From the IMG/VR virus record IMGVR_UViG_3300031957_002643, positions 1 through 64,000 of that record: a stretch of DNA of 64,000 nucleotides; one strand, given 5' to 3'. The notes under the pieces are model-generated. The model saw nothing but the letters and a program-made list of their open reading frames with translations. It made no database searches and was not told the DNA's origin. Below, one piece after another: positions 8,770 through 44,525 of this stretch. Numbering within the stretch: position 1 is the stretch's first letter; the number at the start of each line of letters is the position of its first letter. The position numbers and the translations under genes are program-made.

Positions 8770-8775
8770 TATTTA
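8770..8775 (-). promoter_or_regulatory. putative late promoter (TAAATA)
   Basis: TTAAATA 21 nt upstream of ATG 8748. Confidence 0.5.
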
Positions 8776-22577: not shown

Positions 22578-22585
22578 AACGTCCT

Positions 22586-26223: not shown

Positions 26224-26228
26224 TACTA

Positions 26229-28014: not shown

Positions 28015-28360
28015 CCATATCATACGACTCCACTTGGGTTGCGAAGGTCGTGAGGAATACAACAAGTTCCTGCGAGACGTGACCAACTTCATATCCGAGC
28101 ATGGATATGAACCATATGATCTATACACTCAAGAACAGGGGAAAGGTTGCTCAATACATAGTTATTCATATAGATTTTTCGAACGCCCATGTATTGACTT
28201 TCACTACTATTCGGACCATAGTGGTATTAACCTTCGTGTGAATGGTGAATACTTCTACAAAACCATAAGTCTGGATTTATCGGACTGGCCCAAAGGCGAA
28301 GCGTTCAAACTGTACAATCTAATGGTTGATCGATTAGAGAATTATTTCCATGATCCGTGA
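28004..28360 (+). CDS. E18-family paralog 16
   Basis: MINDHIIRLHLGCEGREE. Confidence 0.7.
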   Translation: MINDHIIRLHLGCEGREEYNKFLRDVTNFISEHGYEPYDLYTQEQGKGCSIHSYSYRFFERPCIDFHYYSDHSGINLRVNGEYFYKTISLDLSDWPKGEAFKLYNLMVDRLENYFHDP

Positions 28361-28700
28361 CAGTATTGCATATGAACGTGGTCAGGAGATCGCATACGCT
28401 GAAGCGGATTATATTGCTAAGCGAATATGGAGCATTGTTGAAAAACATATTGGGCAAGATGCTTATTGCCTTGATTTGATGTCTCATATGACAGATGATA
28501 TGATCTACAACCGGTCGCCAATTAGACAGCTTTCATTTGCGAAACTATCAGGCTATCCCGACCAGATTGCTTGTGGGATTCGTGGCTTCCATATCAGTAC
28601 GGATTTCTTTCTTTGTTTGGAAGTCCATAATGATGTGACTAGAGATGTTTTGCATGATCTTCAAGTATTTGCTGCTGAAGATGACTTTGAGACTGTATGA
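28350..28700 (+). CDS. E18-family paralog 17
   Basis: MIRDSIAYERGQEIAYAE. Confidence 0.7.
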   Translation: MIRDSIAYERGQEIAYAEADYIAKRIWSIVEKHIGQDAYCLDLMSHMTDDMIYNRSPIRQLSFAKLSGYPDQIACGIRGFHISTDFFLCLEVHNDVTRDVLHDLQVFAAEDDFETV

Positions 28701-29077
28701 TGCTGAGTGATCACCTCATAGATGATAATGTCGAGGTCTTGAACCGCGAAGAGGCAAGCTTCATCGTGGGTTCACTGGCAAAAATCTTCAAGAAGTATTT
28801 TGATCCAGTATCAGTGGATGATTTTTGCGAAGACCTGTATACCAAGTTGACCAAGAGATTCAGATGGATTGATGATCCCTCTGGCCAAGAAATGAGAATA
28901 TCGTATAATATTCCCATAAGTGATGCCTATGAGAGATTTCCAATCTATGTATGTGGACAGACTATAGCATATGAGTTCTATGTTTATACAACTGGAAAAC
29001 CTTCGACAGAGGTATGCATGATGGTCTATGAGTTAGAGCGGTTTGCAGAAGAAGATTTTGGAAAATACTATCAATGA
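28700..29077 (+). CDS. E18-family paralog 18
   Basis: MLSDHLIDDNVEVLNREE (second ATG of tandem MM). Confidence 0.7.
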   Translation: MLSDHLIDDNVEVLNREEASFIVGSLAKIFKKYFDPVSVDDFCEDLYTKLTKRFRWIDDPSGQEMRISYNIPISDAYERFPIYVCGQTIAYEFYVYTTGKPSTEVCMMVYELERFAEEDFGKYYQ

Positions 29078-29457
29078 TTTCTGACAGCATAAAACTCGAT
29101 TACCTTAGATACTTGAATCAATTGGAAGCCGGTTTTCTTGTAGATTCTCTATCCGATATTTTTCATGGTGTTTTTGGTAATGACAGTGTAACTCGATTTT
29201 GTCTGTCGTGTTATGATGACTTTACAGAAAAGCCCGTTCTCTCTGCTGATGGGTTCCACATAGTACATGAGATTGTAGAGATGGAACAGAAGGGTGGATA
29301 TGGGTATTCGGCAGAATTGCATGTCAAATTTTTCTGTCTCACTTTCATTGATCAGTTTTCTATTGATGTCACACATGTCAAAAGTGATGTACTGAGAGAG
29401 ATGAAACTGAAGCTGAACCGCCTCTTTAATGAAGAATATTTGGAATTCATGGGATGA
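29074..29457 (+). CDS. E18-family paralog 19
   Basis: MISDSIKLDYLRYLNQLE. Confidence 0.7.
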   Translation: MISDSIKLDYLRYLNQLEAGFLVDSLSDIFHGVFGNDSVTRFCLSCYDDFTEKPVLSADGFHIVHEIVEMEQKGGYGYSAELHVKFFCLTFIDQFSIDVTHVKSDVLREMKLKLNRLFNEEYLEFMG

Positions 29458-29810
29458 TACAAGACACTATCAATGAACTCCACCTTGAACGTATGAACAA
29501 GGTAGAAGCGGATTATATCATAAGCCTGTTGAAGCCTATTTTATGCGAATTCTACGACCGCAGGAAAGCGATTACGCTTTGTGATTATGTTCATGGCAAA
29601 TGCATACAGTATCGTTCACTGGCACGATCAAGCTTCAATCATCGTATTGATATAGTTGAATGCAGTGGCGATGTCCTACTTGTTTACTTTCATTGCGTGA
29701 CGTTTTATAGTAGAATGAAACTCAGCACAACAATGAAGCATAGAGAGAGAAGTAGACTAATTTGTTATTTGCATGATCTCAATGCACAATACTTGGAGTT
29801 CATCGGATGA
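29454..29810 (+). CDS. E18-family paralog 20
   Basis: MIQDTINELHLERMNKVE. Confidence 0.7.
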   Translation: MIQDTINELHLERMNKVEADYIISLLKPILCEFYDRRKAITLCDYVHGKCIQYRSLARSSFNHRIDIVECSGDVLLVYFHCVTFYSRMKLSTTMKHRERSRLICYLHDLNAQYLEFIG

Positions 29811-30166
29811 TTATTCATAGGATCAATAGTGATTATCTCGATCACATCAATAAAAACGAATCCGAGTTCCTTTCAGGGCAGTTCGAGGCTATTCTGTCTC
29901 ATCATGTATCAATAGACAATATAGAGAAATCTCTTTCCGGTTTTAAGCGGGTGGTGCACAAGTACAGAAACTTTATGAATGTTGAGCCGTCTATGAACTG
30001 TTATGTGGATTACGATTACTTCAACATTACAATTTCTATCGTTGGTGAAACATTCAATTGTGCATTCAAGGTGTTTGTGGATGCCAATTTGGATAGCACT
30101 CTAGCATTATTGCGAAATCTTAATGATTTTGAAAATGAGACATTCAAAGAGTACTACAATGCTTAG
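29807..30166 (+). CDS. E18-family paralog 21
   Basis: MIIHRINSDYLDHINKNE. Confidence 0.7.
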   Translation: MIIHRINSDYLDHINKNESEFLSGQFEAILSHHVSIDNIEKSLSGFKRVVHKYRNFMNVEPSMNCYVDYDYFNITISIVGETFNCAFKVFVDANLDSTLALLRNLNDFENETFKEYYNA

Positions 30167-30515
30167 AGATATGATTAAAGACAACCACATCCGATCAATT
30201 AATGATGATGAAGTCAAATTCTTTACCAATCATTTTCGATCTATTTTGGTCAATCACTTGAGCAATAACGAGAGTTCATTTTTGCTTTTTAAGTTGAAAA
30301 TAATTTTATGCACAATTTCCCATTTCGGAGAAATTGAACCACTAATGTCATGCACACGTGGTGAGGACAAGCCTAATTCGATACGGATAATAGTGACGGG
30401 TGAAACGTTTAATAGCGGCATTCATCTAGACATTACTGATGTATGTGATAAGAATAAGCTGATGGAAGAACTGGTTGAATTTTCTAAAGGCAAATTCAAA
30501 GAGTATTACTCATGA
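30159..30515 (+). CDS. E18-family paralog 22
   Basis: MLRDMIKDNHIRSINDDE. Confidence 0.7.
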   Translation: MLRDMIKDNHIRSINDDEVKFFTNHFRSILVNHLSNNESSFLLFKLKIILCTISHFGEIEPLMSCTRGEDKPNSIRIIVTGETFNSGIHLDITDVCDKNKLMEELVEFSKGKFKEYYS

Positions 30516-30874
30516 TCACTAATTTGCTATACTATGATGCTCTTAGTAACGTATATCACGATGAAAGAGCTTTCGTTCTTTGGAATATTGCGGAAATCAT
30601 AACCAAACACAAAGGTAAACTTGCCGCACAGATGTTCATTAACACTTATTTGTATGGTCGATATGCTACTAGACAACTTATGACACACGACGAAATCAGT
30701 TTGTGTTTTGTATGGCCAAATATTCACAAAGATTACATTATTGCAATCATTCATTGTGAGGTTTATCGTACTCGTATTGAAATCGGTACCGAATATATGT
30801 CTAATCCTGACGACTTTATTGTAGACCTTTGGGAATTCCAACGCAATGAATTCAACAAGAGATATAATAAATGA
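30512..30874 (+). CDS. E18-family paralog 23
   Basis: MITNLLYYDALSNVYHDE. Confidence 0.7.
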   Translation: MITNLLYYDALSNVYHDERAFVLWNIAEIITKHKGKLAAQMFINTYLYGRYATRQLMTHDEISLCFVWPNIHKDYIIAIIHCEVYRTRIEIGTEYMSNPDDFIVDLWEFQRNEFNKRYNK

Positions 30875-31242
30875 TCATCCAAAAAATCATACTTAATCAT
30901 GTAGAAGATGTCGGGAAGAAGGAGATGAGATTTATCGCTGATTGGTTTGGTCACATGATTGAAGAACATACGCAGAAATCAGTAAAAACGAGTGATAGTA
31001 TTTTCAAAGAAATCGAAAGATATAACCGTAGTTGGTACGATCTTAAGAGAACTCCAAAAATAAAGATCGAAGAAAGTCTTTTGAATACGTATGCTATTAT
31101 GATTAGTATTCATAGTCCATACTTTGTCTCAAGTTTTTACATAACTTTGGATATGTTTGGTGATTGTGATTACGATGCGTTCATGGATGAGGTGAACCGG
31201 TTCGCTGCAATCGACTATAAGGATTATCATGATGCTTTGTGA
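30871..31242 (+). CDS. E18-family paralog 24
   Basis: MIIQKIILNHVEDVGKKE. Confidence 0.7.
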   Translation: MIIQKIILNHVEDVGKKEMRFIADWFGHMIEEHTQKSVKTSDSIFKEIERYNRSWYDLKRTPKIKIEESLLNTYAIMISIHSPYFVSSFYITLDMFGDCDYDAFMDEVNRFAAIDYKDYHDAL

Positions 31243-31597
31243 TTTGGTGAGACGAGAACACATCGTATCTTTGGCATATGATGAAGCAGCACATATGGCC
31301 AGAAAGTTGGTGCTCATAGACAACAAGTATAAGACACGTAAAGATTTGACGTTTGATGATGTCATGGAATCCATGGAGGGGTGGGATAGTTTGTGTTTCG
31401 ATTCCTACGTCATACCAGAAATAACTATTATTAAAGTAGGCGGAACAAGTATTAATGTCAGATACAGAGGCAATCTGATTCGAGGAGATATATTCGTCAA
31501 CTCCTGTCTTCTTGGGTATTCCAAGTATAAGGAATTGATGTGGGAGCTTATTGCGTTTTCAGGTGATGCATTCACGGATTATCACAATGCTTCGTAA
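31232..31597 (+). CDS. E18-family paralog 25
   Basis: MLCDLVRREHIVSLAYDE (second ATG of tandem MM). Confidence 0.7.
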   Translation: MLCDLVRREHIVSLAYDEAAHMARKLVLIDNKYKTRKDLTFDDVMESMEGWDSLCFDSYVIPEITIIKVGGTSINVRYRGNLIRGDIFVNSCLLGYSKYKELMWELIAFSGDAFTDYHNAS

Positions 31598-31955
31598 CGT
31601 CATCGCAAATCAGTATATTCGCACTATGGTAATGGACGAAGTACGTTTTGTGTCAGAACATATATGTGAATTAGTGAACAAAGTGTTATCTAATCACAAA
31701 TATAATTTGGATGTGAATTTCACAGTAGACACCTTTTTAGATCAAGGCCATATTGGTATATTTGGTCTGAACCCTAATTTGACTATATCGCAGTCTGCAC
31801 GACAACAACTATACATCAAATTGAGCGGTCCCGTTTTTATTTCTGAGGTCAAATGGAACCTTGGTGTTCTCACCGAGAATGAGTTCAATAAGACTATCAG
31901 AAAGCTCAATATATTTGCCGCGAATGAATTCAGATATTATCACAATGCTTCGTAA
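31587..31955 (+). CDS. E18-family paralog 26
   Basis: MLRNVIANQYIRTMVMDE. Confidence 0.7.
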   Translation: MLRNVIANQYIRTMVMDEVRFVSEHICELVNKVLSNHKYNLDVNFTVDTFLDQGHIGIFGLNPNLTISQSARQQLYIKLSGPVFISEVKWNLGVLTENEFNKTIRKLNIFAANEFRYYHNAS

Positions 31956-32316
31956 TGTCATCATACATGAATACGCCAAGCATATGGCACAGAGAGAATT
32001 AATATTCGTATTCACAATCATTGCCCAAATCATGGACAAGTATTTTTATGACCCTATGGACAGGGTAGACGTGGAATTCGCTGTAACGAAAATGATGGAC
32101 AAGGGCAGTTTCGGCCTTCGTGACATCCAACCACGGTTGAGTATTATACATCGCAAGACTGACAAATTCATTATCGGAATAGATAGTCCATTCATACAGT
32201 CGCACACTAATTTTTGGTGCCCTAGTCTAACCATAGAAGAAGCGAACAGTATGAATGAAGAATTGCAAACCTTCGCTGATAATGAGTTCCTAGATTACCA
32301 CGGACTTGTATCTTGA
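31945..32316 (+). CDS. E18-family paralog 27
   Basis: MLRNVIIHEYAKHMAQRE. Confidence 0.7.
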   Translation: MLRNVIIHEYAKHMAQRELIFVFTIIAQIMDKYFYDPMDRVDVEFAVTKMMDKGSFGLRDIQPRLSIIHRKTDKFIIGIDSPFIQSHTNFWCPSLTIEEANSMNEELQTFADNEFLDYHGLVS

Positions 32317-32333: not shown

Positions 32334-32339
32334 TAAATA
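32334..32339 (+). promoter_or_regulatory. putative late promoter (TAAATA), 5 nt before ATG
   Basis: CATAAATAtcgggATG at the boundary between two arrays. Confidence 0.65.
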
Positions 32340-32344
32340 TCGGG

Positions 32345-33067
32345 ATGGTCCACTCTCTACGCAAATACTTGATTGAAAACGAACACCAACAAGGAACATA
32401 CGAATCCTATGTGGCGTATTTCGAGAACTTGGACTACACCAAGAAATCCACCATTGAAAAACTAAAACTTCCATTCCCACCTGCCAACCAAAGAGAAACT
32501 ATGTTTAACAAAGATGGGTATGAAATGGATGGAGGGTATGAAATTTTTGATAATAGTATCATCAGGAAGCCATACATCACCATGAAGATTATTCCAAAGG
32601 ACAAAATCCGATATGGCATAATGCTTGAATTCAATATCAAAACTCACAAATTGGACCAGTGTATTCTTCTTAATCCAAAACGTTCATATGCAACACAAAC
32701 AAATATTAAAGATTGCGCGGTTCAATACCATGCTGGCAATTTTTACTTCAACAGTAATGGTCAACTGGTTCCTAATATTGGATATCACATTTTACAAACA
32801 CTGGTCAGGGACTACCAGCGAAAAACATTTTATAGTGTGCTGAAGAACCGAGAAGACCATATCAACAATAATATTCTTCCTATGATTCAAGGTTTGATCG
32901 ACAATGAGTATTTGTCATTGAAACAGGCCAAGTATTATATGAATGAGATTGCCGAAGAATCTGCAACATATTGGAAACACCAAGACCCATCTCATGGTGA
33001 AACGTTTGAAGAAGCGATTGAAGACTTCCGTAGATTGATGAGGGAGGCTACTCGTGCGCTTACGTAG
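32345..33067 (+). CDS. putative virion-internal protein (MVHSLRKYLIE)
   Basis: Start adjusted; paralog of the next two ORFs (GTYE.Y..YF..LD...KS...L.LPFPPAN). Confidence 0.7.
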   Translation: MVHSLRKYLIENEHQQGTYESYVAYFENLDYTKKSTIEKLKLPFPPANQRETMFNKDGYEMDGGYEIFDNSIIRKPYITMKIIPKDKIRYGIMLEFNIKTHKLDQCILLNPKRSYATQTNIKDCAVQYHAGNFYFNSNGQLVPNIGYHILQTLVRDYQRKTFYSVLKNREDHINNNILPMIQGLIDNEYLSLKQAKYYMNEIAEESATYWKHQDPSHGETFEEAIEDFRRLMREATRALT

Positions 33068-33743
33068 CATTGTGGAGGGTGAGGCACCCGAAGGCACTCT
33101 TGAAGCCTACACGGCGTATTTTAACGGGTTGGACCTCCGTAAGAAATCCGTGTTGGATAATATCAGATTACCGTTCCCACCAGCTAATGAAAGTGAAGCC
33201 ACTTATCGGCTTCACGGTCGATTGGGACCATTTTATGAAGTTGATGATTCAACTTATCGATTGCGGCTTAATCTCGAATACCAAGACATGGATCGCATCT
33301 ATATGGAGTTTTATGAGGACAGTGATCATCCTTATATTTTCAAATTCAAAGAAAAGGTGGATGGTACTGCGAAAGAAGTTCGTTGGTTCGAGAATGGTGA
33401 ACGCCAATATCGTTTCAAATCAACGAGACATATGGAGCACAGCGTTATCAACCACTTAGAACATATGCTTGATTATTGGATTGAGATTAGTCCCAATAAT
33501 GGAGGCATTGAATATGTGATGAAGGGGCAAGCATTTTTGGTGAAGTATGCATCGGAACTCATGTCTCTCAAGGAAAATGAATTTATAGATAGTCGTACTG
33601 CTAGTAGATGCATTGAAGCTGCTATCGATAAAGTAGAAGACGCATTGAATAGATTAGTGAATGATGATGTACTTGAGAAGAATGCTCGTCATGTGAAGGA
33701 ACTCAAAGCAACGTATGAGAAGGTGCGTCATGCGGTTGCGTAA
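33054..33743 (+). CDS. putative virion-internal protein (MRLRSIVE)
   Basis: GGAGG RBS; paralog family. Confidence 0.7.
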   Translation: MRLRSIVEGEAPEGTLEAYTAYFNGLDLRKKSVLDNIRLPFPPANESEATYRLHGRLGPFYEVDDSTYRLRLNLEYQDMDRIYMEFYEDSDHPYIFKFKEKVDGTAKEVRWFENGERQYRFKSTRHMEHSVINHLEHMLDYWIEISPNNGGIEYVMKGQAFLVKYASELMSLKENEFIDSRTASRCIEAAIDKVEDALNRLVNDDVLEKNARHVKELKATYEKVRHAVA

Positions 33744-34527
33744 TATTGTAGAAGCTGAGCAGAAGCGTGGTTCCTTTGAAGACTTTTATGAGTACTTCAC
33801 CAGTATGGATTTGACACATAAATCTGTGCTGGAAAGTCTTCGTCTTCCCTTTTCTACCGCCAACGATAGTGAGATCATCTATAAACAAGATGGCACACGA
33901 ACCGATAGTTACTTCCACTATGGAAATATTATACGTTTTGTATACAGGAAACTCACATCTCCTCATTATGATCAAATTTTAATGGAGTTCGAATTAGACG
34001 GCAGTCTTAGAAAAATCGATTTCAGAAAACATGATTCTCATGGTTATACGTCATATCGGGCAGGTGATATAATGGCTGTGATGTTCGATACACGTGACGG
34101 GCGGCCTATGGTTACTATAAAAAATACAACAGGTAATTCCTCAGATGATTACTTTATGAATGAAATTCGTACTAAGGGCATTGATGATTTTGTTAGCTAC
34201 GTTTATCCCAGCTTCAGAGAAACCGAAAACAATTATGCAGACACACCAGTATGGTTAGAAAGATCACAGGAATTCTTGAGCCGATTACTGGATGCCGGGT
34301 ATATCACAAAAGAAGATGCAATTAATGCGATTGATCAGATTCGTGCGAAGGTTGATCAAATAGAAGACCTATTCATTAATAAAATAGGTCTTGATGATTT
34401 TGGTATCTATTCAACTAATAGTGGAAAGTATCAAAAGGAAATTGAAGACGATCCGGTAGCTCATTTTAACAGGCTCAAAGCTGAAATCGACGCCAAGTTC
34501 AAGGAGGTGTATGATGCGTTTGTCTAA
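33730..34527 (+). CDS. putative virion-internal protein (MRLRNIVE)
   Basis: Start adjusted; paralog family. Confidence 0.7.
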   Translation: MRLRNIVEAEQKRGSFEDFYEYFTSMDLTHKSVLESLRLPFSTANDSEIIYKQDGTRTDSYFHYGNIIRFVYRKLTSPHYDQILMEFELDGSLRKIDFRKHDSHGYTSYRAGDIMAVMFDTRDGRPMVTIKNTTGNSSDDYFMNEIRTKGIDDFVSYVYPSFRETENNYADTPVWLERSQEFLSRLLDAGYITKEDAINAIDQIRAKVDQIEDLFINKIGLDDFGIYSTNSGKYQKEIEDDPVAHFNRLKAEIDAKFKEVYDAFV

Positions 34528-35239
34528 TATCATTGAAGCAACAGGACTTACCTTTGAACAACTTGTTGACGTGTTCCGCAATGCGAATATCAAAACGGTT
34601 GAAGACATCCAAAAATTCAGGTTGAAGAAAAGCATGATCCCAAATCAGAGTGTTTACCTCTTTGATAAAAATGGACGAAATAAAGGTGAGTATGCCGCTC
34701 GTACTTTTAACTTTTATGTAGGTGATGAGGAGGCCGAGAACAATATTCTTGAAGTCTACACGAATGCGGAAGAAGGGTTCAATAAATTTGATTACGATTT
34801 GATCACTGATCGGTTACTTCGTGCTGCTAGGTTTAAGCCCTATACGACAGAGCTTGGAGATATCGTTATTGGTTCGGATCATAAAACTATTACAGATCAG
34901 CCTGTAAGCGTTGATTGGTTCCATGGTGAAATGAGATGTCATTGGCCACTAATAGGTACAAACGGACATGACAGAACCATACCATTTGTGTCCTTTGTCA
35001 GACACAATTTTAATACAATTTATGAAAAGAATGATGATTGGGAACAGGCATTCGATTATGTCACCAATGCCTGTAAGAACAATAAAGAATGGGGATTCAT
35101 TGACGGGGATAGGGCTAAAGCTGTTGTTGAAGTCGTAACGGAAATGATGATCAGATATATGAGACAGACAAACGTGGACAGGAAGATCATTGGTGGTGCT
35201 GAACGCAAGAGACAGGAGATGATCGATGAAATCTCTTAA
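34514..35239 (+). CDS. putative virion-internal protein (MRLSNIIE)
   Basis: AGGAGG RBS; LFDKNGR.KG shared with the next two ORFs. Confidence 0.7.
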   Translation: MRLSNIIEATGLTFEQLVDVFRNANIKTVEDIQKFRLKKSMIPNQSVYLFDKNGRNKGEYAARTFNFYVGDEEAENNILEVYTNAEEGFNKFDYDLITDRLLRAARFKPYTTELGDIVIGSDHKTITDQPVSVDWFHGEMRCHWPLIGTNGHDRTIPFVSFVRHNFNTIYEKNDDWEQAFDYVTNACKNNKEWGFIDGDRAKAVVEVVTEMMIRYMRQTNVDRKIIGGAERKRQEMIDEIS

Positions 35240-35924
35240 GACATATCTTGTGGAGACAGAACAAGTGGATGATTTGATGAGTTTCTTCAAAGAAAAGAAG
35301 ATATCTGATCTGAATACATTCAAGGAAATCAGGAAAACTCACACATTTAATACGCCCAATCAGGTATTGCTTTTTGACAGAGATGGTGAGCCTAAAGGTA
35401 ATCAAATCGTTGCTAGGAATTACAATGAATGGAGCGGTCCATATACTTTTGCGGTCTTCATTAATGATCCTTCTCTATCTTACAATACCTTCGAGATCAC
35501 TAATGGGAAACTATTCTCTATGGGTAGAGAATTCATGACCGAGGACGGTTATATTGGAAGACGGTATCATGACAAGGATTACTTGCCGCTCAAAGTAAGT
35601 ATTAACACAAAGTATGATAGCGAGAAAACCATTTGGTTTTTTGATCGCACAGAGATCACAAGGTTTGGAGAATTTATTCAAAAAATTCTATACCATGAAA
35701 TGAAGCATGTATTGAATGATCATGAGAAAGCCTTTGAAGCCGTTAAGAAAGCTGTGACTGTAAATGTCGAAGGCGGCTTTGTGAGTAGAAGTCTTGCAGC
35801 GAGAGTATTGAAGGTGGTGTTGAAAACCCGTTTCCTAAATCGTATTCTTTCAACTGACATGAACCGGGAGAAGATCAAACCTATCATACAAAAGGTGGAG
35901 GACTTGATCAATGAAATCTCTTAA
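35226..35924 (+). CDS. putative virion-internal protein (MKSLKTYLVE)
   Basis: LLFDRDGEPKGNQ. Confidence 0.7.
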   Translation: MKSLKTYLVETEQVDDLMSFFKEKKISDLNTFKEIRKTHTFNTPNQVLLFDRDGEPKGNQIVARNYNEWSGPYTFAVFINDPSLSYNTFEITNGKLFSMGREFMTEDGYIGRRYHDKDYLPLKVSINTKYDSEKTIWFFDRTEITRFGEFIQKILYHEMKHVLNDHEKAFEAVKKAVTVNVEGGFVSRSLAARVLKVVLKTRFLNRILSTDMNREKIKPIIQKVEDLINEIS

Positions 35925-36690
35925 CACTTACCTGTTTGAAGAAACAAAGGTGACTGATCCATTTGAGTTTTTCAAGACTGTGGAAATTAATACATTGGAT
36001 GATTATCTCAAACTTAGAGACAATTACAGATTTGAAGTATCCAATTTCGTTCTCTTGTTTGACAAGAATGGACGCAAGAAGGGTGATCAAGTCATGGAAC
36101 ATAGAAGAGTTAATAAATGGATTCACATCTATCTTGATAACAAGAAGGGTTTCAACAATTTCTACATCAATTTGGATGGAATACTGATTAGGGCTGAGAT
36201 GTCACAAATGGAAGCATCTGATAGAATGACTACGTTCAGAATGACGCCCAATAGATATCTTCCATCATCGATCAATGTGTTTGCTTCAACGGGTGATCCT
36301 GCTGGTTTGACATGCTCATGGGAGACTCGTTCTGTAATCAATCCATTGGATAAATCATTTACCATTTTCAGTAAGTTTGCGAGTTATTATCTTCTATCGG
36401 AACAAACCACAAAATTGGAACAATCGACGGGCGGAATAAAGACATTGGATTTGTTTCTCGAAAGTCTTGAAACGCTTAAAGAGATGGTTGCAGCGAATGT
36501 GGATGCTGGTTTCATTGACTATCTCGATGCGATGGAAGCAGTTAGAGATTTCTCCGATAAGGCGATTGAGAAGACTTCAAGACATGCTATCACTTACGAA
36601 CCAGAGTATAGAGACGAATACAGAGAAATAATCGGCGGTATGGCACGTGCTAGGGACGAATTATTTGCACAATATGAAAGGAATAGGTGA
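35911..36690 (+). CDS. putative virion-internal protein (MKSLNTYLFE)
   Basis: LLFDKNGRKKGDQ. Confidence 0.7.
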   Translation: MKSLNTYLFEETKVTDPFEFFKTVEINTLDDYLKLRDNYRFEVSNFVLLFDKNGRKKGDQVMEHRRVNKWIHIYLDNKKGFNNFYINLDGILIRAEMSQMEASDRMTTFRMTPNRYLPSSINVFASTGDPAGLTCSWETRSVINPLDKSFTIFSKFASYYLLSEQTTKLEQSTGGIKTLDLFLESLETLKEMVAANVDAGFIDYLDAMEAVRDFSDKAIEKTSRHAITYEPEYRDEYREIIGGMARARDELFAQYERNR

Positions 36691-37445
36691 TGGACTTTAT
36701 TGATCAGGCTTATGCTGAATTTAGAAAGCATGATTTCAATGATTTGGAAATCATCAAAAATTATCGTTTCCCATTGAAGATGCCAGAAACGGCATTTAGC
36801 GCGTATCGTTATAGAGATAGTGACGATACAGACATCAAGGCTATCAAATTTTTTGGCACAGCAAAAAACGGACAAACTGGTGCTTTCTTTGTGTTTCCAG
36901 AAGAAAGGGACACGATAGCCGCACAACCAAATGCGTTTGGTGTTTCAATCAATGATGGTAAGCTGTATCGTGTATGTTGGGGTGCAAAATTTGGTCGATA
37001 TGAGCCTGACATCTCTAAAGTAGTATCAGAGAGATATTCTGGACCAGCAGAGATATGGATACAGGCCGATAACGACAAACTCAGTTACAAATGGCGTGTT
37101 GGAACCTATTCGGAAAGTATGAATCCTCCTCGACCATACAGAATGGCGGAACAGATGATTATTCATGAGGTGATACATGAATTTTCAACGGGTGATACGT
37201 GGCGTGCATTTGCGAATGTATCCAACCATTTTCTGACTGTAGAAGCAAAGATCATATTCATGTTTGAAAACTCTTATATTGATATCGATCTTAGAAATGA
37301 ACTTGTCAAAAGTGCATTTAATTGTTCGCTTGAATTATTGAACAATATGGCCGACAAAAAAGACAGTGAGGATCGAAAAAGAGCAGACGAGTACATTAAT
37401 AATTTTATCCGCAAGATCGGACCAATTTTGAAGAAATATAAATAG
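36687..37445 (+). CDS. paralog of the same family lacking the N-terminal tag
   Basis: Shares PN...I..G....V.W, GPA and NSYID segments with neighbours. Confidence 0.65.
   Translation: MMDFIDQAYAEFRKHDFNDLEIIKNYRFPLKMPETAFSAYRYRDSDDTDIKAIKFFGTAKNGQTGAFFVFPEERDTIAAQPNAFGVSINDGKLYRVCWGAKFGRYEPDISKVVSERYSGPAEIWIQADNDKLSYKWRVGTYSESMNPPRPYRMAEQMIIHEVIHEFSTGDTWRAFANVSNHFLTVEAKIIFMFENSYIDIDLRNELVKSAFNCSLELLNNMADKKDSEDRKRADEYINNFIRKIGPILKKYK
37437..37444 (+). promoter_or_regulatory. T4-type late promoter TATAAATA, 4 nt before ATG
   Basis: Exact T4 late consensus. Confidence 0.7.
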
Positions 37446-37448
37446 AAG

Positions 37449-38267
37449 ATGCGTATTCGTTCAATCATCACCGAAGGCATTGTTGCCGATGCCGAAAAGC
37501 TTTATCATGAGATTGAAAAGCTGGTTGAAACCTTTGAGCCTACAGAAGAATGGTTCAAAGTTGCTAATGCTCGTATAGCGCTTCCAAAGACGGAATTTCT
37601 TACATTTGATAAAAATGATAGAATGTATGGTGGTTTGTTCCATTGGAAACAGCCTCATATGAATGTCTTAGTCTGGTTTAAACCTCAGAAAAACCCAGCC
37701 CATAATACACAACCGCCAAATTATATTTCTATAGGGCTGAAATCTGGAAGAATTCGAGAAGTTGGATGGACACAAGCTCCTATCGTTGATGATACTGATG
37801 ACATAAAATTCCACAAAGTGAATGGTCCAGCGGTATTCGAAACCAACTATATGGGCGATCAGATGCGTGTCAGTGGACTATGGTATGTCAATGGGTATTA
37901 TCATTTGCCACGTGATGTAATGAATGCATTGTTCCAATACGCGAAGCATAATAATCCTTTTGTTGATACTTTAGACCATGATGATCGGCTAGGTATACAT
38001 GATGAATTACCATACCCAAAACAATTTGATCTGACAATGAAATGGGTGAAGGAGTTTGTCGATAATGGATATGGTTCTGGTGAAGAAGCTATAAAGGCGA
38101 TGAATGGTACGATCAAAAGAATTGTCAATGATGAACAGCTAACGCTTGACGTTGTTTTCGGCAACGAGGATTCTGATTCTGATGCGAAGAATTGGGATGC
38201 GGGTGTTCAACGTCTAGAAGCTTGGAAAACTGATGCTGAAGCTCGTGTAAGGGAGGCGTTCGCATGA
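37449..38267 (+). CDS. putative virion-internal protein (MRIRSIITE)
   Basis: HKVNGPA; DNGY...EEA. Confidence 0.7.
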   Translation: MRIRSIITEGIVADAEKLYHEIEKLVETFEPTEEWFKVANARIALPKTEFLTFDKNDRMYGGLFHWKQPHMNVLVWFKPQKNPAHNTQPPNYISIGLKSGRIREVGWTQAPIVDDTDDIKFHKVNGPAVFETNYMGDQMRVSGLWYVNGYYHLPRDVMNALFQYAKHNNPFVDTLDHDDRLGIHDELPYPKQFDLTMKWVKEFVDNGYGSGEEAIKAMNGTIKRIVNDEQLTLDVVFGNEDSDSDAKNWDAGVQRLEAWKTDAEARVREAFA

Positions 38268-38806
38268 GATTGAGGCAGCTCGTTGAAAAGAAGAGAACCT
38301 TCAAGACAGAAGCGTATTATGATGCCGATGGGAAATTTCATCGTTTAGATGGGCCAGCTTATGTGTCCTATTACGACAATGGTCAATTGTATCGAGAGGT
38401 TTGGAGGGAACACGGTAGATATAAAAGAGACGATGGCCCGTGCTTGGTTAACTATAGTGTCAACGGAGTACTAACGGAACAGATATGGAATAGTAACGAT
38501 AAGCCCGACGAGGTTCCCACAAAATATATTGATACTGAAACTGGAGGGATTGTCATGTCTTGGGGACTGATAAATCCCCCCTATGAGTTTTACTCACACA
38601 GACTTGATGGACCGGCTGAAATTGTTTGGGATCAGAAGAAAAACGAAATGAGATGTTTCTGGTATATCGACAATTACATGTACGGATATAGAACCAGCAG
38701 TATTAATGAACCACCGCAACAATTCTTGAAACAGAGAGAACATGAAACGGATGATCCATTCCCTGAAAAGGTAAAAGTCTTGTTACCGAATGGAGAATAT
38801 CTATGA
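38264..38806 (+). CDS. HRxDGPA-repeat protein (MRLRQLVE)
   Basis: HRLDGPA twice, RDDGP. Confidence 0.75.
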   Translation: MRLRQLVEKKRTFKTEAYYDADGKFHRLDGPAYVSYYDNGQLYREVWREHGRYKRDDGPCLVNYSVNGVLTEQIWNSNDKPDEVPTKYIDTETGGIVMSWGLINPPYEFYSHRLDGPAEIVWDQKKNEMRCFWYIDNYMYGYRTSSINEPPQQFLKQREHETDDPFPEKVKVLLPNGEYL

Positions 38807-39414
38807 GGTTAAATCAGATCGTTGAATCCAAGAAGAAAAAATTCACGCAAACCGAGATGTACTATGACAAAAACGGCAAAATGCACCGGTTGGATGGTCC
38901 TGCTTATAGCGGGTACAGGTCACACCAGAAATTGGCTAGAGAAGAGTGGTTAATTCATGGAAAACACCATTCTAAAGAACACCCATCTCTTATTTTGTAT
39001 TATCCTAAAGGCACGCCTAATATGGAGGCATGGGATTGGTTTGGTAAAGGGCACCGGTTAGATGGTCCTGCTGTAACATATTATAATCCTGATGGTACCG
39101 TGTCGAAAACCGTATGGTTAAAGGATGGGCAAACTCATAGAGATGAGGATTTACCAGCAGTATACGATTACGAGAATCGAGATTATCAGTGGTATAAAAA
39201 TGAAAATCCGCACCGAGACAATGGTCCTGCTGGTGTTAGAAGGGTGAATGGTCGTTGGTATTATGAGTGGGTATTTCATGGAAATAATTTTGGCGAAACT
39301 GAAGACCCAAATAATCCACCCGGTGCATATTTGGATTATCGAAAAACTTATAACAAAGAACCATTCCCAAAAGAGGTTTGGATCAAGATTGAAGGTGAGC
39401 CAGATTTCTCATGA
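38803..39414 (+). CDS. HRxDGPA-repeat protein (MRLNQIVE)
   Basis: About five repeats (HRLDGPA, HRDEDLPA, HRDNGPA). Confidence 0.75.
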   Translation: MRLNQIVESKKKKFTQTEMYYDKNGKMHRLDGPAYSGYRSHQKLAREEWLIHGKHHSKEHPSLILYYPKGTPNMEAWDWFGKGHRLDGPAVTYYNPDGTVSKTVWLKDGQTHRDEDLPAVYDYENRDYQWYKNENPHRDNGPAGVRRVNGRWYYEWVFHGNNFGETEDPNNPPGAYLDYRKTYNKEPFPKEVWIKIEGEPDFS

Positions 39415-39812
39415 TTATTGAACGCATTCAGTATTGTGACAAAGATGGGCATGTGTCTCGTTTGGATGGCCCTGCTGCAATTGAATATTCTGGCGGTAAA
39501 AAAGATTCATTTTTTACCGCATGGTATTATTCTGGTCTTTATATTCGTAGACAAGATAATGACTATGCAGAAATGATGCCTGCAAAATTTGTTCAGTATT
39601 TGCATTATCACATGTACAATCATGTCCCCCAAGGGGAAGTTGTCAAAGTATTCACGGACATTATCAAGAAGATTTACAAAGGTGGATACTTGAGTAAGAA
39701 AGACGCAGTTAAATACATTAGAGAATACAAAATTGCAGATGAGACCAATGACTTGCCAAATCCAAGATGGGTTGGACAGGATTTAGGTATTATGGATGAC
39801 GAGATGTACTGA
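39411..39812 (+). CDS. single HRxDGPA-like repeat plus helical domain
   Basis: SRLDGPA; GGYLSKKDA. Confidence 0.65.
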   Translation: MIIERIQYCDKDGHVSRLDGPAAIEYSGGKKDSFFTAWYYSGLYIRRQDNDYAEMMPAKFVQYLHYHMYNHVPQGEVVKVFTDIIKKIYKGGYLSKKDAVKYIREYKIADETNDLPNPRWVGQDLGIMDDEMY

Positions 39813-41476
39813 TGAAGCTGAGACAAATTGTTGAAGATACAGGATTAAAGAACTATCGAGAGGATTACTATAAAGTATCATCCGATGGACCAGATGTTCT
39901 TCATCGCGACGATGGACCGGCACATGCTATCTACAAAAACGGTAAACCAGTTCTTGAGCACTGGTATCAAAATGGATCAACACATCGTGACAGCGACAGT
40001 CCTGCTTGCACGCATATCAATAATGATAAGAAAACAGAAATATGGTACAAAGATAACGTCAAACATAGAGAAGGTGCACCTGCTCAAATTGAAACCAGAT
40101 TGAATGATATTGGTTATGACATTGAGAAATGGTTCTTTATGGGTGTTGCCCATCGTGATACCAAGGATGGACCACAAGAAACATGGAAAAATTCTGTTGG
40201 TACAGTTTACAAGCAAATATGGTTGGATAAAGATAAGGGACATCATCGTGAAGATGGACCATCATTTATCATGTATCAGCCGAATGGACAGGTCGCCAAA
40301 GAAGAATGGAAAATCAATAATAAACTCCATCGTGATTCCGAGGATGGTCCCGCGTATATCGACAATATGAACAATGACATACGGTACTATTGGAAGGGAA
40401 AGATACACAGACTGGATGGACCTGCATGGGTCGTTGATGGATCATCCGAATGGGCCGTTAACGGCGAGACGATTTGTCTGTCCGATGATCTGAATTTGCC
40501 AGAAAAGTATAGAGAAGCATTTGAAACTGCGGTTGCCGAATACAAAAAGAATAATCCTATCACTGAGGCTAAGGTTATTCGAGATGGTCAGATCACATAT
40601 TACGATCATGTTTCCAGACGTGATCTCCAAAGGCTGATTACTGATAATGAAGAGATCAGAAAATATGGTATGCGTGGCGTGTACTCAGATAGTTTATCTG
40701 TAGCGTCATCCTTAAGAGCACATCATGTGAACTTGGTAAATAATACGGGCAATAACGGTTCATTGATTATTATCGGTGCCAATCGAAAACAATTGGACCA
40801 TATGGACCACAACAATAAGTTCATTTTCTTGTTACCAGATTTAGATAACTGGTTGTTGGAATTCGTTGAACCAAGGGTTTATGATCACTATTCGTTGGTT
40901 CGAATGTTGAATGATATGACTAAAATATTTGGCACCATGAAGCTGATCAAGGCGAATAGAAGAATGCCCGGCTTTCAAGTGTTTGATGAGATCGAGGTTG
41001 GACAAGTATTTGCACCATTGACCGAAGCTAAAGTGATCAAGGATGATGCTAGTTTTGGGTATTCTCAAGGCAAGCAGATTTACACCAAGCTTGCTCGCAG
41101 AGATGCAACCATGCTTTTGGAGAAATACAAGAGAGATGGCATTCGCTTCATCATCACAGAAGATGAAATGTATTATGGACCGCCTGCTTTGTTTTACCAT
41201 TATTCAATAGCAAGTCTTGCTGGTTATGACATTTATGAAGATCGAATGGATTGCGCTGTTGTTGCTCGTAGTGCTGCACAAATTTATAGCATGGAGATGA
41301 CATTCAGAAAATCTGATCCAGTCTTGGTGCTTGAGGATCATCCCGGTTGGTTCATCATGTTGAGGGGCCAGCCATTGCTGTATAAATTCCCATTGGAAGC
41401 AACGATTGCACGCTTGCAGCCTGTATGGGGCAAGATAAGTATTCAAGAAGCAGCGTTGTATTTCGATGAGAATTAA
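39812..41476 (+). CDS. HRxDGPA-repeat protein fused to two repeated domains; putative polyprotein (MKLRQIVE)
   Basis: About seven repeats; internal PITEAKVI and PLTEAKVI junctions. Confidence 0.75.
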   Translation: MKLRQIVEDTGLKNYREDYYKVSSDGPDVLHRDDGPAHAIYKNGKPVLEHWYQNGSTHRDSDSPACTHINNDKKTEIWYKDNVKHREGAPAQIETRLNDIGYDIEKWFFMGVAHRDTKDGPQETWKNSVGTVYKQIWLDKDKGHHREDGPSFIMYQPNGQVAKEEWKINNKLHRDSEDGPAYIDNMNNDIRYYWKGKIHRLDGPAWVVDGSSEWAVNGETICLSDDLNLPEKYREAFETAVAEYKKNNPITEAKVIRDGQITYYDHVSRRDLQRLITDNEEIRKYGMRGVYSDSLSVASSLRAHHVNLVNNTGNNGSLIIIGANRKQLDHMDHNNKFIFLLPDLDNWLLEFVEPRVYDHYSLVRMLNDMTKIFGTMKLIKANRRMPGFQVFDEIEVGQVFAPLTEAKVIKDDASFGYSQGKQIYTKLARRDATMLLEKYKRDGIRFIITEDEMYYGPPALFYHYSIASLAGYDIYEDRMDCAVVARSAAQIYSMEMTFRKSDPVLVLEDHPGWFIMLRGQPLLYKFPLEATIARLQPVWGKISIQEAALYFDEN

Positions 41477-41963
41477 AGACCTATTGCCTGAAACTGGAAT
41501 TATGTCGGAGTCAAAAAGACTTCCGGGTAAGAATCCGTTGAACAGCATCTATTATGATATCAGGAAAGCAGAGGTTTCCAGATTATTGGAAATCAACGAA
41601 CATGATGGGCTTCGCGGTTACTATGATCGTGAATATCATGAGATGTTCGTAAGCAGTTCCAGATCACATCACCATGCCGATATTTTTGACATTGCTGGAA
41701 GGCATGGAATGATTCAGTGTCATGATGGTTTTGAATTCTGCATTGCCAAAAGTCTTCTACAGTTGAACCATATGGAATGGGATTTGCCTGAACGTGAGGG
41801 TACAGCTTATATGCTTGCTGATCATCACCCGTGGTTCATTGTAACCCATTTCTCTCATCAAATGAAAACGGCCATGACCAAATTTGAAAAGACGTTTGGC
41901 AAGTTGGTTGAGATTACCCGTGACAATAGAGATCAGGTATTGTTTGAATCTATATGTGAATGA
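41466..41963 (+). CDS. stand-alone paralog of the polyprotein C-terminal domains
   Basis: R......L......G[MIL]R, [VS]SS...HH pattern; MRIKDLLPE N-terminus. Confidence 0.65.
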   Translation: MRIKDLLPETGIMSESKRLPGKNPLNSIYYDIRKAEVSRLLEINEHDGLRGYYDREYHEMFVSSSRSHHHADIFDIAGRHGMIQCHDGFEFCIAKSLLQLNHMEWDLPEREGTAYMLADHHPWFIVTHFSHQMKTAMTKFEKTFGKLVEITRDNRDQVLFESICE

Positions 41964-41983
41964 CTTGTAAACATTAATAAAGT

Positions 41984-42484
41984 GTGGTAAATATATTGAA
42001 GTTGTTGAAATTATTTGAGGGTGATATGGATCATGCTGCGCATATGGCGAAAACTGGTTATTGGGGCAAACAAGGGGCCGGACTGGTATTCTTTTGCACT
42101 CGGACTAAAAGATTTTGCTTATCTTTTCGGTCGTCCTTAGTCGCTGAGCCTCATACGTGGTCCACATGGGGTGGTGCTATGGATGAGGGCGAGGAACCCG
42201 CAGAAACGGCTGTACGGGAGGCTCACGAGGAAACAGGGTTATCTCTGGACATCAAGAAGCTTACCCGTATTCATGTGAACCAGATTCCAAATGTTTTCAC
42301 CTACACGACATTCGTTGCTCTTGTGAATGAAGAGTTCGAACCGCACACTGAAGGCAATTGGGAAGTTGATGGTTATGAGTGGTGCAAGTTTGGTGATTGG
42401 CCAGAGCCTTTACATAAAGGCATGAAACAAACCCTGACCCATCAACCGGCTTTGGACATTCTTGAGGAACTTAGTCGTAGATGA
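41984..42484 (+). CDS. Nudix hydrolase with capsid-targeting-like N-terminus (start uncertain, possibly TTG 41996 or 42002)
   Basis: Nudix box GGAMDEGEEPAETAVREAHEETGL; KLLKLFE; TAAATA at 41988-41993. Confidence 0.88.
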   Translation: MVNILKLLKLFEGDMDHAAHMAKTGYWGKQGAGLVFFCTRTKRFCLSFRSSLVAEPHTWSTWGGAMDEGEEPAETAVREAHEETGLSLDIKKLTRIHVNQIPNVFTYTTFVALVNEEFEPHTEGNWEVDGYEWCKFGDWPEPLHKGMKQTLTHQPALDILEELSRR

Positions 42485-42685: not shown

Positions 42686-43504
42686 TTAGATGTACTTTCG
42701 CATTTTTGAGATAAGGGATGCAAATTCATTACCACCAATGACTCGTTCCATTCTATTGCAAATCTCATGCATCTTTATATTGCCACGAGTACCATGGTGA
42801 ACTTCTGACAAGTATAACTCAATGAAGGCAGTCAAGAATGCGGCTTCGTCATCGTTCACCACGACATTAAAATTATCAGAAAGGAAGTGTCTGAGATATG
42901 AACCAACGCGGTTGCGTCCATTTCTTGTATGCGATCTTACTTGTTGAGTGAAATATTCTTTTTTCAAGTCAAAAGTTTCGTATACCCGATTGTTCATCCA
43001 CTTGCACAAATCACGAGTAGGCTCGATACCATTCGTGCCTGATGTGATCAATTTCACTTCACCACGTGACAACCCGCCTTTTTCAATATATTTCTGGAAG
43101 ATCGAATCTGAATGATCGCCAGTCAGACTCGCGGTCATCATTTTATCTATATTCTTTCTGGCGGTATCAGTAATTTGTTCAGCTAGATTGTCGTCGAGAT
43201 GGAAGAAGGAATGAGTCTTACCATCGGTGCGTCTCACGGGCATTTCGCGTCCCGGTTCCCACCAGCCCGTTTCCTTTTCCTGCGCACTCATGTATCGATC
43301 TTCATCATAACGACCGATTTCAACTGCATCACAGGAATAGCACACATAAGGTGCAACTTGCTGACCCTTGCCATTGAAAAGGGCTTCAGCTTCTTCCTTA
43401 CAATACGGACAGTGAACAACCTTATTTGTTGAAGGTGCATCCGTATCCGTTTCGGCTTCTTGTTGGTCCCAAAACGGATCATCCATGGAAAGTGCATTAT
43501 TCAT
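42686..43504 (-). CDS. hypothetical protein with N-terminal zinc ribbon
   Basis: CPYC...CYSC. Confidence 0.65.
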   Translation of the reverse strand: MNNALSMDDPFWDQQEAETDTDAPSTNKVVHCPYCKEEAEALFNGKGQQVAPYVCYSCDAVEIGRYDEDRYMSAQEKETGWWEPGREMPVRRTDGKTHSFFHLDDNLAEQITDTARKNIDKMMTASLTGDHSDSIFQKYIEKGGLSRGEVKLITSGTNGIEPTRDLCKWMNNRVYETFDLKKEYFTQQVRSHTRNGRNRVGSYLRHFLSDNFNVVVNDDEAAFLTAFIELYLSEVHHGTRGNIKMHEICNRMERVIGGNEFASLISKMRKYI

Positions 43505-44525
43505 AGTTGTCAGCCACACGATTAGCAGTAATCAGGTTTGCTCTACGGTTCTTGAGTTCTGTGATTTTCTCACAGTTCAGATAGGTACAAGCCGAACGGA
43601 TACCGCCAAGGATATCTTGCACGGTATTATGCACACTACCACGGCTTTGTCTAGCCGTGATCTTTCCTTCTACCGTTCGGTAATTTTTGGTCGAATCGTA
43701 ACCATTGGCTTTCTCGGAAGAGTTACCATAGTGGTAGATCGTTCCATCGCCATTACCATAACCCGGTTCAACGCCTTCTTGGTGATAGGCTAACATACCT
43801 CCAAGCATGACCATATCAGCGCCAAGTGCGAATGCCTTAACCAGATCAGAAGGAAGACGGCACCCACCATCGGAAATGATTTTGGGACACTGGTATTGAA
43901 GTGAGAATTCATCGAACTGATCGAGCAGTGTTGCCTGTGGTACACCGATACCAGTCTTGAGACGGGTGGTACAAACTGATCCAGAACCAATCCCAACTTT
44001 AACATAATCAGGCACAAATTTCAATTCGGTCAGCATATGAAGAATGGCCCATGGATTGGCAAGATTTCCATAGATGAACTTCACGTCATAATTGTCCTTG
44101 CACCATTTCATCAGTGCATGTGCAGTCTTCATATTGGTTTCAGTATGACCGTTAGCTACATCGAAACAAACGAGGCGAACATCATGACCGAACATACCCA
44201 TGATAGATTTGAAATTCTGAATGCTTTCAACATCAGCACCAACCGTTGGGATCATGTATTTGTAGTCGGCACCAACTGCTTTTGCCGCATCCCAATGGAT
44301 CGTTTCTTTGGTTTTTTGAATGGCTGTAAAGATGCGATGTTCTTGTAGCGCCTTGGCCATATGGATGTTACCAATGTTCATCATATTGGAGGCAATAATT
44401 GGAACACCATCAACATCAGGATCAATCAGGTCAACTTTTGCCCGAGAATCGATCTTGCTTACGGGCGCTGGCTTGATCAGTACATCTTTGAAATCGTAGC
44501 CACGTTCGGCGCATTGGAGTGTCAT
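43497..44525 (-). CDS. guaC: GMP reductase (IMPDH/GMPR family)
   Basis: DFKDVLIKP, DVANG, KVGIGSGSVCTTR, SDGG, MLGG, GGIRSACTY; no CBS insert. Confidence 0.88.
   Translation of the reverse strand: MTLQCAERGYDFKDVLIKPAPVSKIDSRAKVDLIDPDVDGVPIIASNMMNIGNIHMAKALQEHRIFTAIQKTKETIHWDAAKAVGADYKYMIPTVGADVESIQNFKSIMGMFGHDVRLVCFDVANGHTETNMKTAHALMKWCKDNYDVKFIYGNLANPWAILHMLTELKFVPDYVKVGIGSGSVCTTRLKTGIGVPQATLLDQFDEFSLQYQCPKIISDGGCRLPSDLVKAFALGADMVMLGGMLAYHQEGVEPGYGNGDGTIYHYGNSSEKANGYDSTKNYRTVEGKITARQSRGSVHNTVQDILGGIRSACTYLNCEKITELKNRRANLITANRVADNYE

Follow-up and report, generated by a model that had tools for sequence, protein, structure and literature searches.

The sequence analysed here, referred to as the window, comprised the first 64 kb of a 335,552-bp virus contig (IMG/VR record IMGVR_UViG_3300031957_002643), which was assembled from seawater metagenomes and had direct terminal repeats and a G+C content of 42%. 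Between positions 32345 and 42484, the window held 14 tightly packed open reading frames (ORFs), all in the same direction, and the present analysis concerns this array and the short N-terminal leaders with which most of its proteins begin. An independent JGI gene call gave identical starts and lengths for all 14 ORFs. The leaders followed the consensus M-[KR]-[LI]-x-x-[LI]-[VIFT]-E and were 8-11 residues long. A preliminary description of the locus had counted such leaders in 12 ORFs, 11 of which could be found where it had placed them. The twelfth, 'KLLKLFE' (41984-42019), would need a GTG start at 41984, whereas both the JGI call of 152 aa and a GAGG Shine-Dalgarno sequence located 5 nt before the ATG at 42026 favoured the latter start. 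Therefore, 'KLLKLFE' most likely belongs to an untranslated 5' region, and the leader count becomes 11 of 14. The coordinates of the features are collected in Table 1.

Table 1. Positions of the array ORFs, TAAATA motifs, head genes and further leader-bearing genes (window positions, unless marked as genome or as a position on another contig)
Feature	Position	Strand	Description
ORF1	32345..33067	+	240 aa; leader MVHSLRKYLIE; orphan paralogous family ORF1-8
ORF2	33054..33743	+	229 aa; GTG start; leader MRLRSIVE; 14-nt overlap with ORF1
ORF3	33730..34527	+	265 aa; leader MRLRNIVE; 14-nt overlap with ORF2
ORF4	34514..35239	+	241 aa; leader MRLSNIIE; 14-nt overlap with ORF3
ORF5	35226..35924	+	232 aa; leader MKSLKTYLVE; 14-nt overlap with ORF4
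ORF6	35911..36690	+	259 aa; leader MKSLNTYLFE; 14-nt overlap with ORF5
ORF7	36690..37445	+	251 aa; ORF1-8 family without leader; start corresponds to the mature-part start of the others
ORF8	37449..38267	+	272 aa; leader MRIRSIITE; family ORF1-8
ORF9	38264..38806	+	180 aa; leader MRLRQLVE, then MORN-variant-like 'HRxDGPA' repeats
ORF10	38803..39414	+	203 aa; leader MRLNQIVE; 'HRxDGPA' repeats as in ORF9
ORF11	39411..39812	+	133 aa; N-terminus MIIE only; one repeat
ORF12	39812..41476	+	554 aa; leader MKLRQIVE
ORF13	41466..41963	+	165 aa; leader MRIKDLLPE
ORF14, NUDIX hydrolase	42026..42484	+	152 aa; without leader
Unlinked orphan	7936-8748	-	270 aa; leader MKLLNVFE
TAAATA	32334..32339	+	exactly 5 nt before ORF1 ATG
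TAAATA within TATAAATA	37439..37444	+	4 nt before ORF8 ATG
TAAATA	41988..41993	+	32 nt before ATG 42026, GAGG Shine-Dalgarno between
TAAATA	8770-8775	-	21 nt upstream of gene 7936-8748
Prohead protease	genome 74308-74940		PF03420 Peptidase_S77 match at 74380-74814, 82.9 bits, above cut-off
Major capsid protein	genome 76065-77285		406 aa; matches Pfam Gp23
Leader-bearing genes	genome 81784-82242, 123857-124741, 156383, 243857	-	
Leader-bearing genes	genome 143787, 144280, 178260, 257989, 259365, 280540		listed without a strand sign
MRLNNLFE / MKIKQLFE family	L065:3902-4990; P0131, P0132; L081:657-1388, 3966-4673	- (L065)	motif 'LFHGSR...GxHFASD'

ORF1-8 could be aligned end to end as a single, very divergent family (12-23% identical), in which the leader is followed by a helix, the motif 'RLPxP..N....FDKNGR', a beta-rich middle, the motif 'DNGYI..eA' and a C-terminal helix. 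The leader Glu was kept in seven of the eight members. 'HRxDGPA' repeats made up ORF9, ORF10 and the N-terminal third of ORF12 and gave 327 database matches at E<=1e-3; the homologues carry MORN_2 (PF07661) or DUF6745 (PF20530), and ORF9-12 themselves fell below the Pfam thresholds for both families. Behind its N-terminal third of MORN-variant/DUF6745-like repeats, ORF12 consisted of two copies of the ORF13 domain, and the C-terminal motif 'GGYLSKKDA' of ORF11 was common to ORF1-8. ORF14 was identified as a NUDIX hydrolase (PF00293, 55.2 bits against a cut-off of 21.1; phrog_1198, 2.4e-24). The proteins of ORF1-13 ranged from 15.7 to 64 kDa, with an isoelectric point (pI) below 6.2 in 10 of 13. 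BLAST comparison separated the array proteins into at least four mutually unrelated sequence groups. Since ORF1-8 form one paralogous family, the 11 leaders do not represent 11 independent events and correspond to roughly four or five independent protein types.

The significance of the leader was evaluated against the remaining genes of the phage. An [LIV]xE motif with its Glu at residues 7-11 was present in 11 of the 14 array ORFs compared to 50 of 457 other genes (Fisher 2e-8), the background expectation being 8%. When all six reading frames of the genome were translated and searched for the strict 8-mer M[KR][ILF]..[LIV][LIVFTY]E, 17 matches were obtained, every one of which headed an ORF and lay no more than 29 codons from an in-frame stop; the ORF was at least 104 aa long in 16 of the 17. 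The reversed pattern produced 5 matches, and 40 permuted patterns produced a mean of 1.1 and a maximum of 4. The codons used at the conserved residues varied (CGC, CGG, CGT, AGA and AGG for Arg; TTA, TTG and CTG for Leu), which argues for selection on the peptide and not on an RNA site.

These counts bear on the simplest explanation of the leaders, namely that they carry no signal and that the shared N-termini are a residue of tandem duplication, kept by gene overlap and supplemented by chance. ORF1-8 are indeed one family, and each of ORF2-6 overlaps the preceding gene by exactly 14 nt, a fixed length indicative of a duplicated unit; in these genes, the first four codons of the leader also encode, in another frame, the last codons of the upstream gene. 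However, the [IL][IV]E part of the leader falls outside the overlap, and the Glu persists in a family of such low identity. The leader was also found on the MORN-like proteins, on ORF13, on unlinked non-homologous genes and on non-homologous genes of a sister phage described below. With all 17 genome-wide matches at an N-terminus against a permuted mean of 1.1, the explanation was largely refuted, and we regard it as very improbable. The leader is a real N-terminal pattern, portable across unrelated proteins and kept through gene turnover.

Beyond the array, about 12 further leader-bearing genes were distributed over the genome; they were unlinked and mutually unrelated, and almost all were without a Pfam family. 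One of them, beginning MKLLNVFE at position 8748 on the minus strand, had already been noted in the preliminary description and was present as reported. The characterisation of the array as an unusually large, expanded set was fair and, given these additional genes, even understated with respect to size, but it did not extend to independence, as eight of the array genes are paralogues of one another. The leader-bearing gene at genome 81784-82242, located in the head module, codes for a very acidic protein of 152 aa which starts with MRIISLFEE. Its orthologue in the sister phage is 57% identical and starts with MKLQQLFDD, in which Asp replaces the leader Glu. This protein may be a component of the head core or of the head interior.

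The sister phage was represented by an IMG/VR contig of 63.9 kb (G001) with a syntenic layout and a major capsid protein (MCP) 93% identical to that of the window phage; its other conserved genes were 31-78% identical. The corresponding array, at 15.2-26.3 kb in the window orientation, contained no BLAST-detectable homologue of ORF1-8, and similarity to ORF9-12 was limited to the level of the repeats. The leaders MRLNNLFE, MKLKDIAE, MRLKHIITE, MKLEALFE, MRLSDIIVE and MKFDRLIE could nevertheless be recognised among its proteins. The 295-aa protein starting with MKFDRLIE (L064:17580-18464, minus strand) carried an ORF13-like domain fused to a NUDIX domain which was 58% identical to the window NUDIX. 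Thus, the NUDIX enzyme is tagged in the sister phage and untagged in the window, where ORF13 and NUDIX are separate genes and the latter has its own TAAATA motif and Shine-Dalgarno sequence.

Another protein of the sister array, 363 aa long and starting with MRLNNLFE, gave a sub-threshold Pfam match to ART-PolyVal (E 0.028), which provides a lead, and only a lead, towards a possible ADP-ribosyltransferase. Its orthologues from two other metagenomes begin with MKIKQLFE, and one of these belongs to a third such array (L081). If true, the ART-PolyVal identity would parallel T4 Alt, a packaged ADP-ribosyltransferase. A PDB profile search with the sister protein returned no match, and its AlphaFold2 (AF2) model, with a mean predicted local distance difference test (pLDDT) of 39, was unusable.

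The MCP shared approximately 55% identity with those of the jumbo myoviruses RaK2, 121Q, phAPEC6, BF, CBB, XaC1 and Phosso, which placed the window phage in the RaK2/121Q-like clade as a marine jumbo myovirus. Its head module followed the order portal, acidic 229-aa protein, T4-type prohead protease, scaffold and MCP. In T4, the protease gp21 cuts after the Glu of L/I-x-E, removes N-terminal propeptides of 7-65 residues and itself carries the site LIE-9, and the first 10 residues of the internal protein (IP) IPIII are enough for capsid targeting (PMC9026906). The Glu-terminated leaders of the 11 array ORFs lie within this site rule and these propeptide lengths. The protease of the window phage begins MTKTALIE/T (a slash follows the Glu of the site), with a second site, HLIE/S, at residue 22, and that of the sister phage begins MTRSVLVE/T. 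Four [LIV]xE sites were present in the N-terminus of the MCP; the last of them, TMLME/NASGG, aligned with VMLTE/SATSG of phAPEC6 and defined a conserved propeptide site, ML[MT]E/[NS]A. An MCP of phAPEC6/121Q size cut at this site has a computed mass of 37.2 kDa, and for the 121Q MCP a mass of 42.2 kDa was predicted and 37 kDa observed (PMC5646251). The L-x-E sites in protease and MCP together with the agreement of 37.2 and 37 kDa indicate that the prohead protease of the clade very probably keeps the T4 L/I-x-E rule.

Based on these observations, our confidence is a little above even that the leaders are propeptides resembling the capsid targeting sequence (CTS) of T4, which would load proteins into the prohead and be cut after the Glu. 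With 11 tagged genes among the 13 uncharacterised genes of the array, the analysis suggests a large set of packaged proteins. In the proposed mechanism, the block 32334-41963 would be a hyper-variable, late-promoter-driven cassette. The affinity of the leader for the scaffolding core would bring each protein into the prohead, the Peptidase_S77 protease would then cut after the leader Glu, and the mature proteins of 16-64 kDa would remain in the DNA-filled head, from which they may be ejected on infection or in which they may form an inner body. The tag is also borne by about 12 unrelated small proteins encoded elsewhere in the genome, most of them expressed, in this scheme, from TAAATA promoters exactly 5 nt before the ATG. 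From targeting and cleavage through retention and ejection to an effector role, the steps of this scheme are what we infer, and the mature cargo is more likely accessory and conflict-related because of the rapid gene turnover. The capsid-packaging interpretation of the preliminary description was partly and indirectly supported, by the L/I-x-E leaders, the Peptidase_S77 protease, the unrelated tagged cargo, the persistence of the tag through gene turnover and the TAAATA motif, but not by homology to the T4 IPs, by size or by charge.

Several observations weigh against capsid packaging. The array proteins, at 16-64 kDa and with pI values of mostly 4.9-6.2, are unlike the small basic T4 IPs. Internal [LI]xE sites in the array proteins were not depleted (32 observed against 31.8 expected), and ORF12 and ORF13 were rich in them (8 against 4.8 and 6 against 2.0 expected, respectively). 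In the sister phage, several MORN-like genes begin with MKLKEVVQ, MKLTEVVQ or MKLKEVMD, with Gln or Asp at the Glu position, and retain an L-x-E at residues 3-5. The 'MRLR' part of the leader is conserved by descent within the ORF1-8 family and by dual coding in the 14-nt overlaps of ORF2-6. Among the virion proteins of phAPEC6, an N-terminal [LIV]xE was not clearly enriched (approximately 11 of 60 compared to a background of about 12%, by hand count of 62 virion proteins detected by mass spectrometry). There was no terminator between the array and the long co-directional gene block preceding it, so that earlier read-through transcription is possible. Moreover, targeting and cleavage are deduced for an uncultured phage known as a seawater metagenome-assembled genome. 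A complex prediction of the protease with residues 1-50 of ORF9 scored 0.00, which weighs neither way.

The internal sites are also relevant to a second explanation, in which prohead targeting and leader cleavage do take place, but the proteins are core or scaffold factors that are degraded or expelled before DNA packaging, or form a static inner body, and are in neither case ejected effectors. The T4 core proteins gp22, gp67 and gp68 enter in the same manner and are cut to pieces (PMC9026906), a fate which the excess of internal sites in ORF12 and ORF13 would fit. The virions of 121Q and phAPEC6 hold an inner body visible by bubblegram imaging, with component proteins that have not been identified (PMC5646251, PMC7247149); it measures 91 x 18 nm in both phages (PMC7247149), and its presence speaks for the CTS-like reading as well. 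Inner bodies of the PhiKZ type are built of processed proteins, according to Thomas et al. 2012 as cited in PMC7247149. However, essential assembly factors should be conserved, and the array turns over despite 93% MCP identity, a behaviour that fits accessory or arms-race genes such as the T-even ip loci (PMC12373910). ORF1-11, in addition, showed a mild deficit of internal sites, with 16 observed against approximately 23 expected, below the trend of the proteome, which has a 1.2-fold excess. This second explanation is consequently judged decidedly unlikely.

Comparison with phAPEC6 was extended to its individual genes. A single gene of this phage, gp182c (MRFRDLTE), carried the strict leader, and it appeared with one peptide in the table of virion mass spectrometry, in line with the CTS-like reading. 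When the array and the scattered leader proteins were searched against phAPEC6 by tblastn, the NUDIX hydrolase was the sole match. The RCC1-repeat virion proteins of phAPEC6 (MK817115; gp001-gp010, gp549 and gp551) all begin with MLPF[AG]RM[VIL]KYGN, the conserved N-terminus of a paralogous virion family that is unrelated to the leader studied here.

The time of expression of the array was addressed through the motif TAAATA, which was present at all four sites given in the preliminary description (32334, 37439 and 41988 on the plus strand, 8770-8775 on the minus strand). TAAATA was avoided in the window, with 12 copies against 41 expected and at least 12 in 100 of 100 shuffles; five of the seven plus-strand copies lay within the array and none in the 26 kb before it. 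It was 10-13-fold enriched in intergenic upstream regions, and approximately half of the 140 genomic copies were in sense orientation and at most 60 nt ahead of a gene start. The genes preceded by it included those for the baseplate hub, portal, tail fibre, large terminase, tail tube, tail sheath and fibre-like proteins. ATAAATA is found ahead of structural genes in CBB and GAP32, the former of which also encodes a sigma factor similar to gp55 (PMC5259590). In T4, late promoters consist of an 8-bp TATA box at position -10 (PMC2988020). TAAATA thus resembles a late-promoter core. The earlier designation of the array as late-expressed is well motivated by the motif before ORF1, ORF8, the NUDIX gene and the morphogenetic genes, and it is from this motif that the timing is read. 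A scan of 26-44 kb for sigma-70 promoters and terminators gave results equal to shuffle expectation, and in a search of RNA-seq runs the sequence turned up in two seawater DNA runs only. Two further plus-strand copies, at 39710-39715 and 40737-40742, lie inside ORF11 and ORF12, the first of them 96 nt before ORF12; these may be internal promoters or chance occurrences.

The spacing between TAAATA and the next ATG heading an ORF of at least 50 aa was counted genome-wide. A spacing of exactly 5 nt was found at 22 genes, with 0-2 cases at the neighbouring spacings; the cases inside the window were 32334-32347 (ORF1) and 63881 on the minus strand. A 5-nt gap leaves no room for a Shine-Dalgarno sequence, and leaderless or nearly leaderless late mRNAs are therefore predicted. 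The TAAATA-N5-ATG arrangement was kept at the orthologous genes of the sister phage, and none was found in phAPEC6. A leader-like N-terminus was present in 14-15 of the 24 genes with TAAATA-N4-6-ATG.

This coincidence of tag and leaderless arrangement would be expected if the tag were real but served another purpose, such as docking to tail, baseplate or fibre, recognition by a chaperone or host protease, or a feature of late or leaderless translation. The poor AF2 models likewise provide no structural or interaction link of the tag to the scaffold or protease. Most of the tagged array genes, however, are operon-internal and have ordinary Shine-Dalgarno sites, which argues that the tag is not a translation feature of leaderless mRNAs. 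The invariant core of the tag is, moreover, the L/I-x-E of T4-type proteases, which recurs both in the protease of this phage, at residue 8, and in the maturation site conserved in the MCP. A purpose outside the capsid is accordingly considered unlikely, and packaging into the capsid continues to be preferred. In this lineage, the coupling of the tag with apparently leaderless late promoters is an additional peculiarity of gene expression that can be tested.

Searches for relatives of the array proteins were conducted at several levels. A profile of ORF1-8 run against 1.84 billion representatives recovered its own eight members and one weak, unrelated repeat protein only. No match was obtained when the array was compared by BLAST with 50,697 phage records at the nucleotide and protein levels, and IMG/VR scans with ORF12 and ORF3 revealed no relatives. 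Pfam and PHROGs, applied to all array proteins, returned nothing for ORF1-13, and NUDIX was the sole match. The AF2 model of ORF1, computed from the eight-sequence alignment, reached a pLDDT of 52, too low for a fold search; at this confidence, only disorder in the leader, a middle part rich in beta structure and helix at the C-terminus can be read from it. An ESM Atlas search with ORF13 gave no score >=0.9 and no template modelling (TM) score >=0.5.

Elsewhere in the window, gp5-like, SbcCD-like, RNA ligase and thymidylate synthase genes were found. Directly upstream of the leader array, at approximately 21800-32316 on the plus strand, lies another tandem array of about 25 divergent paralogues of approximately 115-150 aa; these are 21-41% identical, and nearly all begin with an MI[NR]D.I-like sequence. 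The counterpart of this paralogue array in the sister phage is equally long and contains no orthologues that BLAST could detect. On the other side, an IMPDH/FMN-dehydrogenase-like gene at 43497-44525 on the minus strand (phrog_9582, 6e-70), 56% identical in the sister phage, provides a conserved boundary on the right of the variable block.

A broader reading of the data, which we hold only tentatively, is that the tag defines a capsid-cargo regulon of at least 25 proteins, approximately 5% of the proteome, in a marine RaK2/121Q-like lineage and mostly driven by leaderless late promoters of the TAAATA-N5-ATG type. If this were true, MK/R-L-x-x-L/I-x-E would be an 8-residue address, any bearer of which would be loaded into the prohead before the S77 protease trimmed it, with the 10-kb array as the arms-race hotspot of this system. 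The cargo in relatives would include enzymes, namely the tagged NUDIX fusion and the possible ADP-ribosyltransferase. Such a regulon would put names to the inner-body or ejected proteins of the clade and would provide a minimal, portable packaging tag.

Comparison with known systems revealed the closest parallel in T4. The T4 proteins IPI, IPII, IPIII and Alt, like those of the array, have a short N-terminal propeptide ending in L/I-x-E, and in both phages a protease of the gp21 family (S77) is encoded and a T4-like late promoter core is present. As in the array, the tag of the T4 and T-even IPs is common to otherwise unrelated proteins, and the T-even ip loci are hotspot clusters that keep the tag but differ in gene content from one close relative to the next. 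These loci are described as diverse, with the CTS alone conserved, in PMC3012670 and PMC12373910 and by Repoila et al. 1994 as cited there. Capsid targeting by a cleavable leader has been demonstrated experimentally, in the work cited here, only for T4, whose cargo proteins Ip1-3 are injected inhibitors of restriction systems. The differences are equally clear. The T4 IPs have no sequence homology to ORF1-13 by Pfam or PHROG; they are basic proteins of 8-20 kDa with a CTS of 10-19 aa, whereas the array consensus is 8 aa long and the cargo of 16-64 kDa is mostly acidic. The members are also far more numerous than in T-even phages: 11 lie in the array and about 12 elsewhere, and the strict motif heads 16 genes in total. 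The window phage is a 335-kb RaK2/121Q-like jumbo phage and not a Tequatrovirus, and many of its tagged genes are predicted to be leaderless.

In phages of the phiKZ/SPN3US type, head-internal proteins are cut after Glu and lose N-terminal propeptides, similar to the scheme proposed for the array (PMC5694885, PMC7411985, PMC10052503); they belong to a different lineage in which no homology to the array was found. The inner-body proteins of PhiKZ are also without similarity to phAPEC6 proteins (PMC7247149). The Asteriusvirus phages 121Q and phAPEC6 share with the window phage the same module of MCP, protease, scaffold and portal and the conserved L-x-E maturation site of the MCP. They differ in that phAPEC6 has no array homologues except NUDIX, one strict-leader gene and no TAAATA-N5-ATG class. 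The MORN repeat variant (PF07661) and DUF6745 (PF20530) proteins, often named 'YwqK antitoxin-like', have the 'HRxDGPA' beta-hairpin repeat of ORF9-10 and of the ORF12 N-terminus, without the leader and the C-terminal domains of the array. The array, whose proteins lie outside the T4 IP families, would accordingly extend the 'CTS plus variable cargo' principle, as a larger variant, to a distant lineage of jumbo phages. If this is confirmed, packaged proteins of uncultured jumbo phages could be recognised from sequence by the N-terminal tag. Candidates for injected effectors or inner-body proteins could then be listed, and the tag itself might be a minimal means of loading foreign proteins into such capsids, in extension of what is established for T4.

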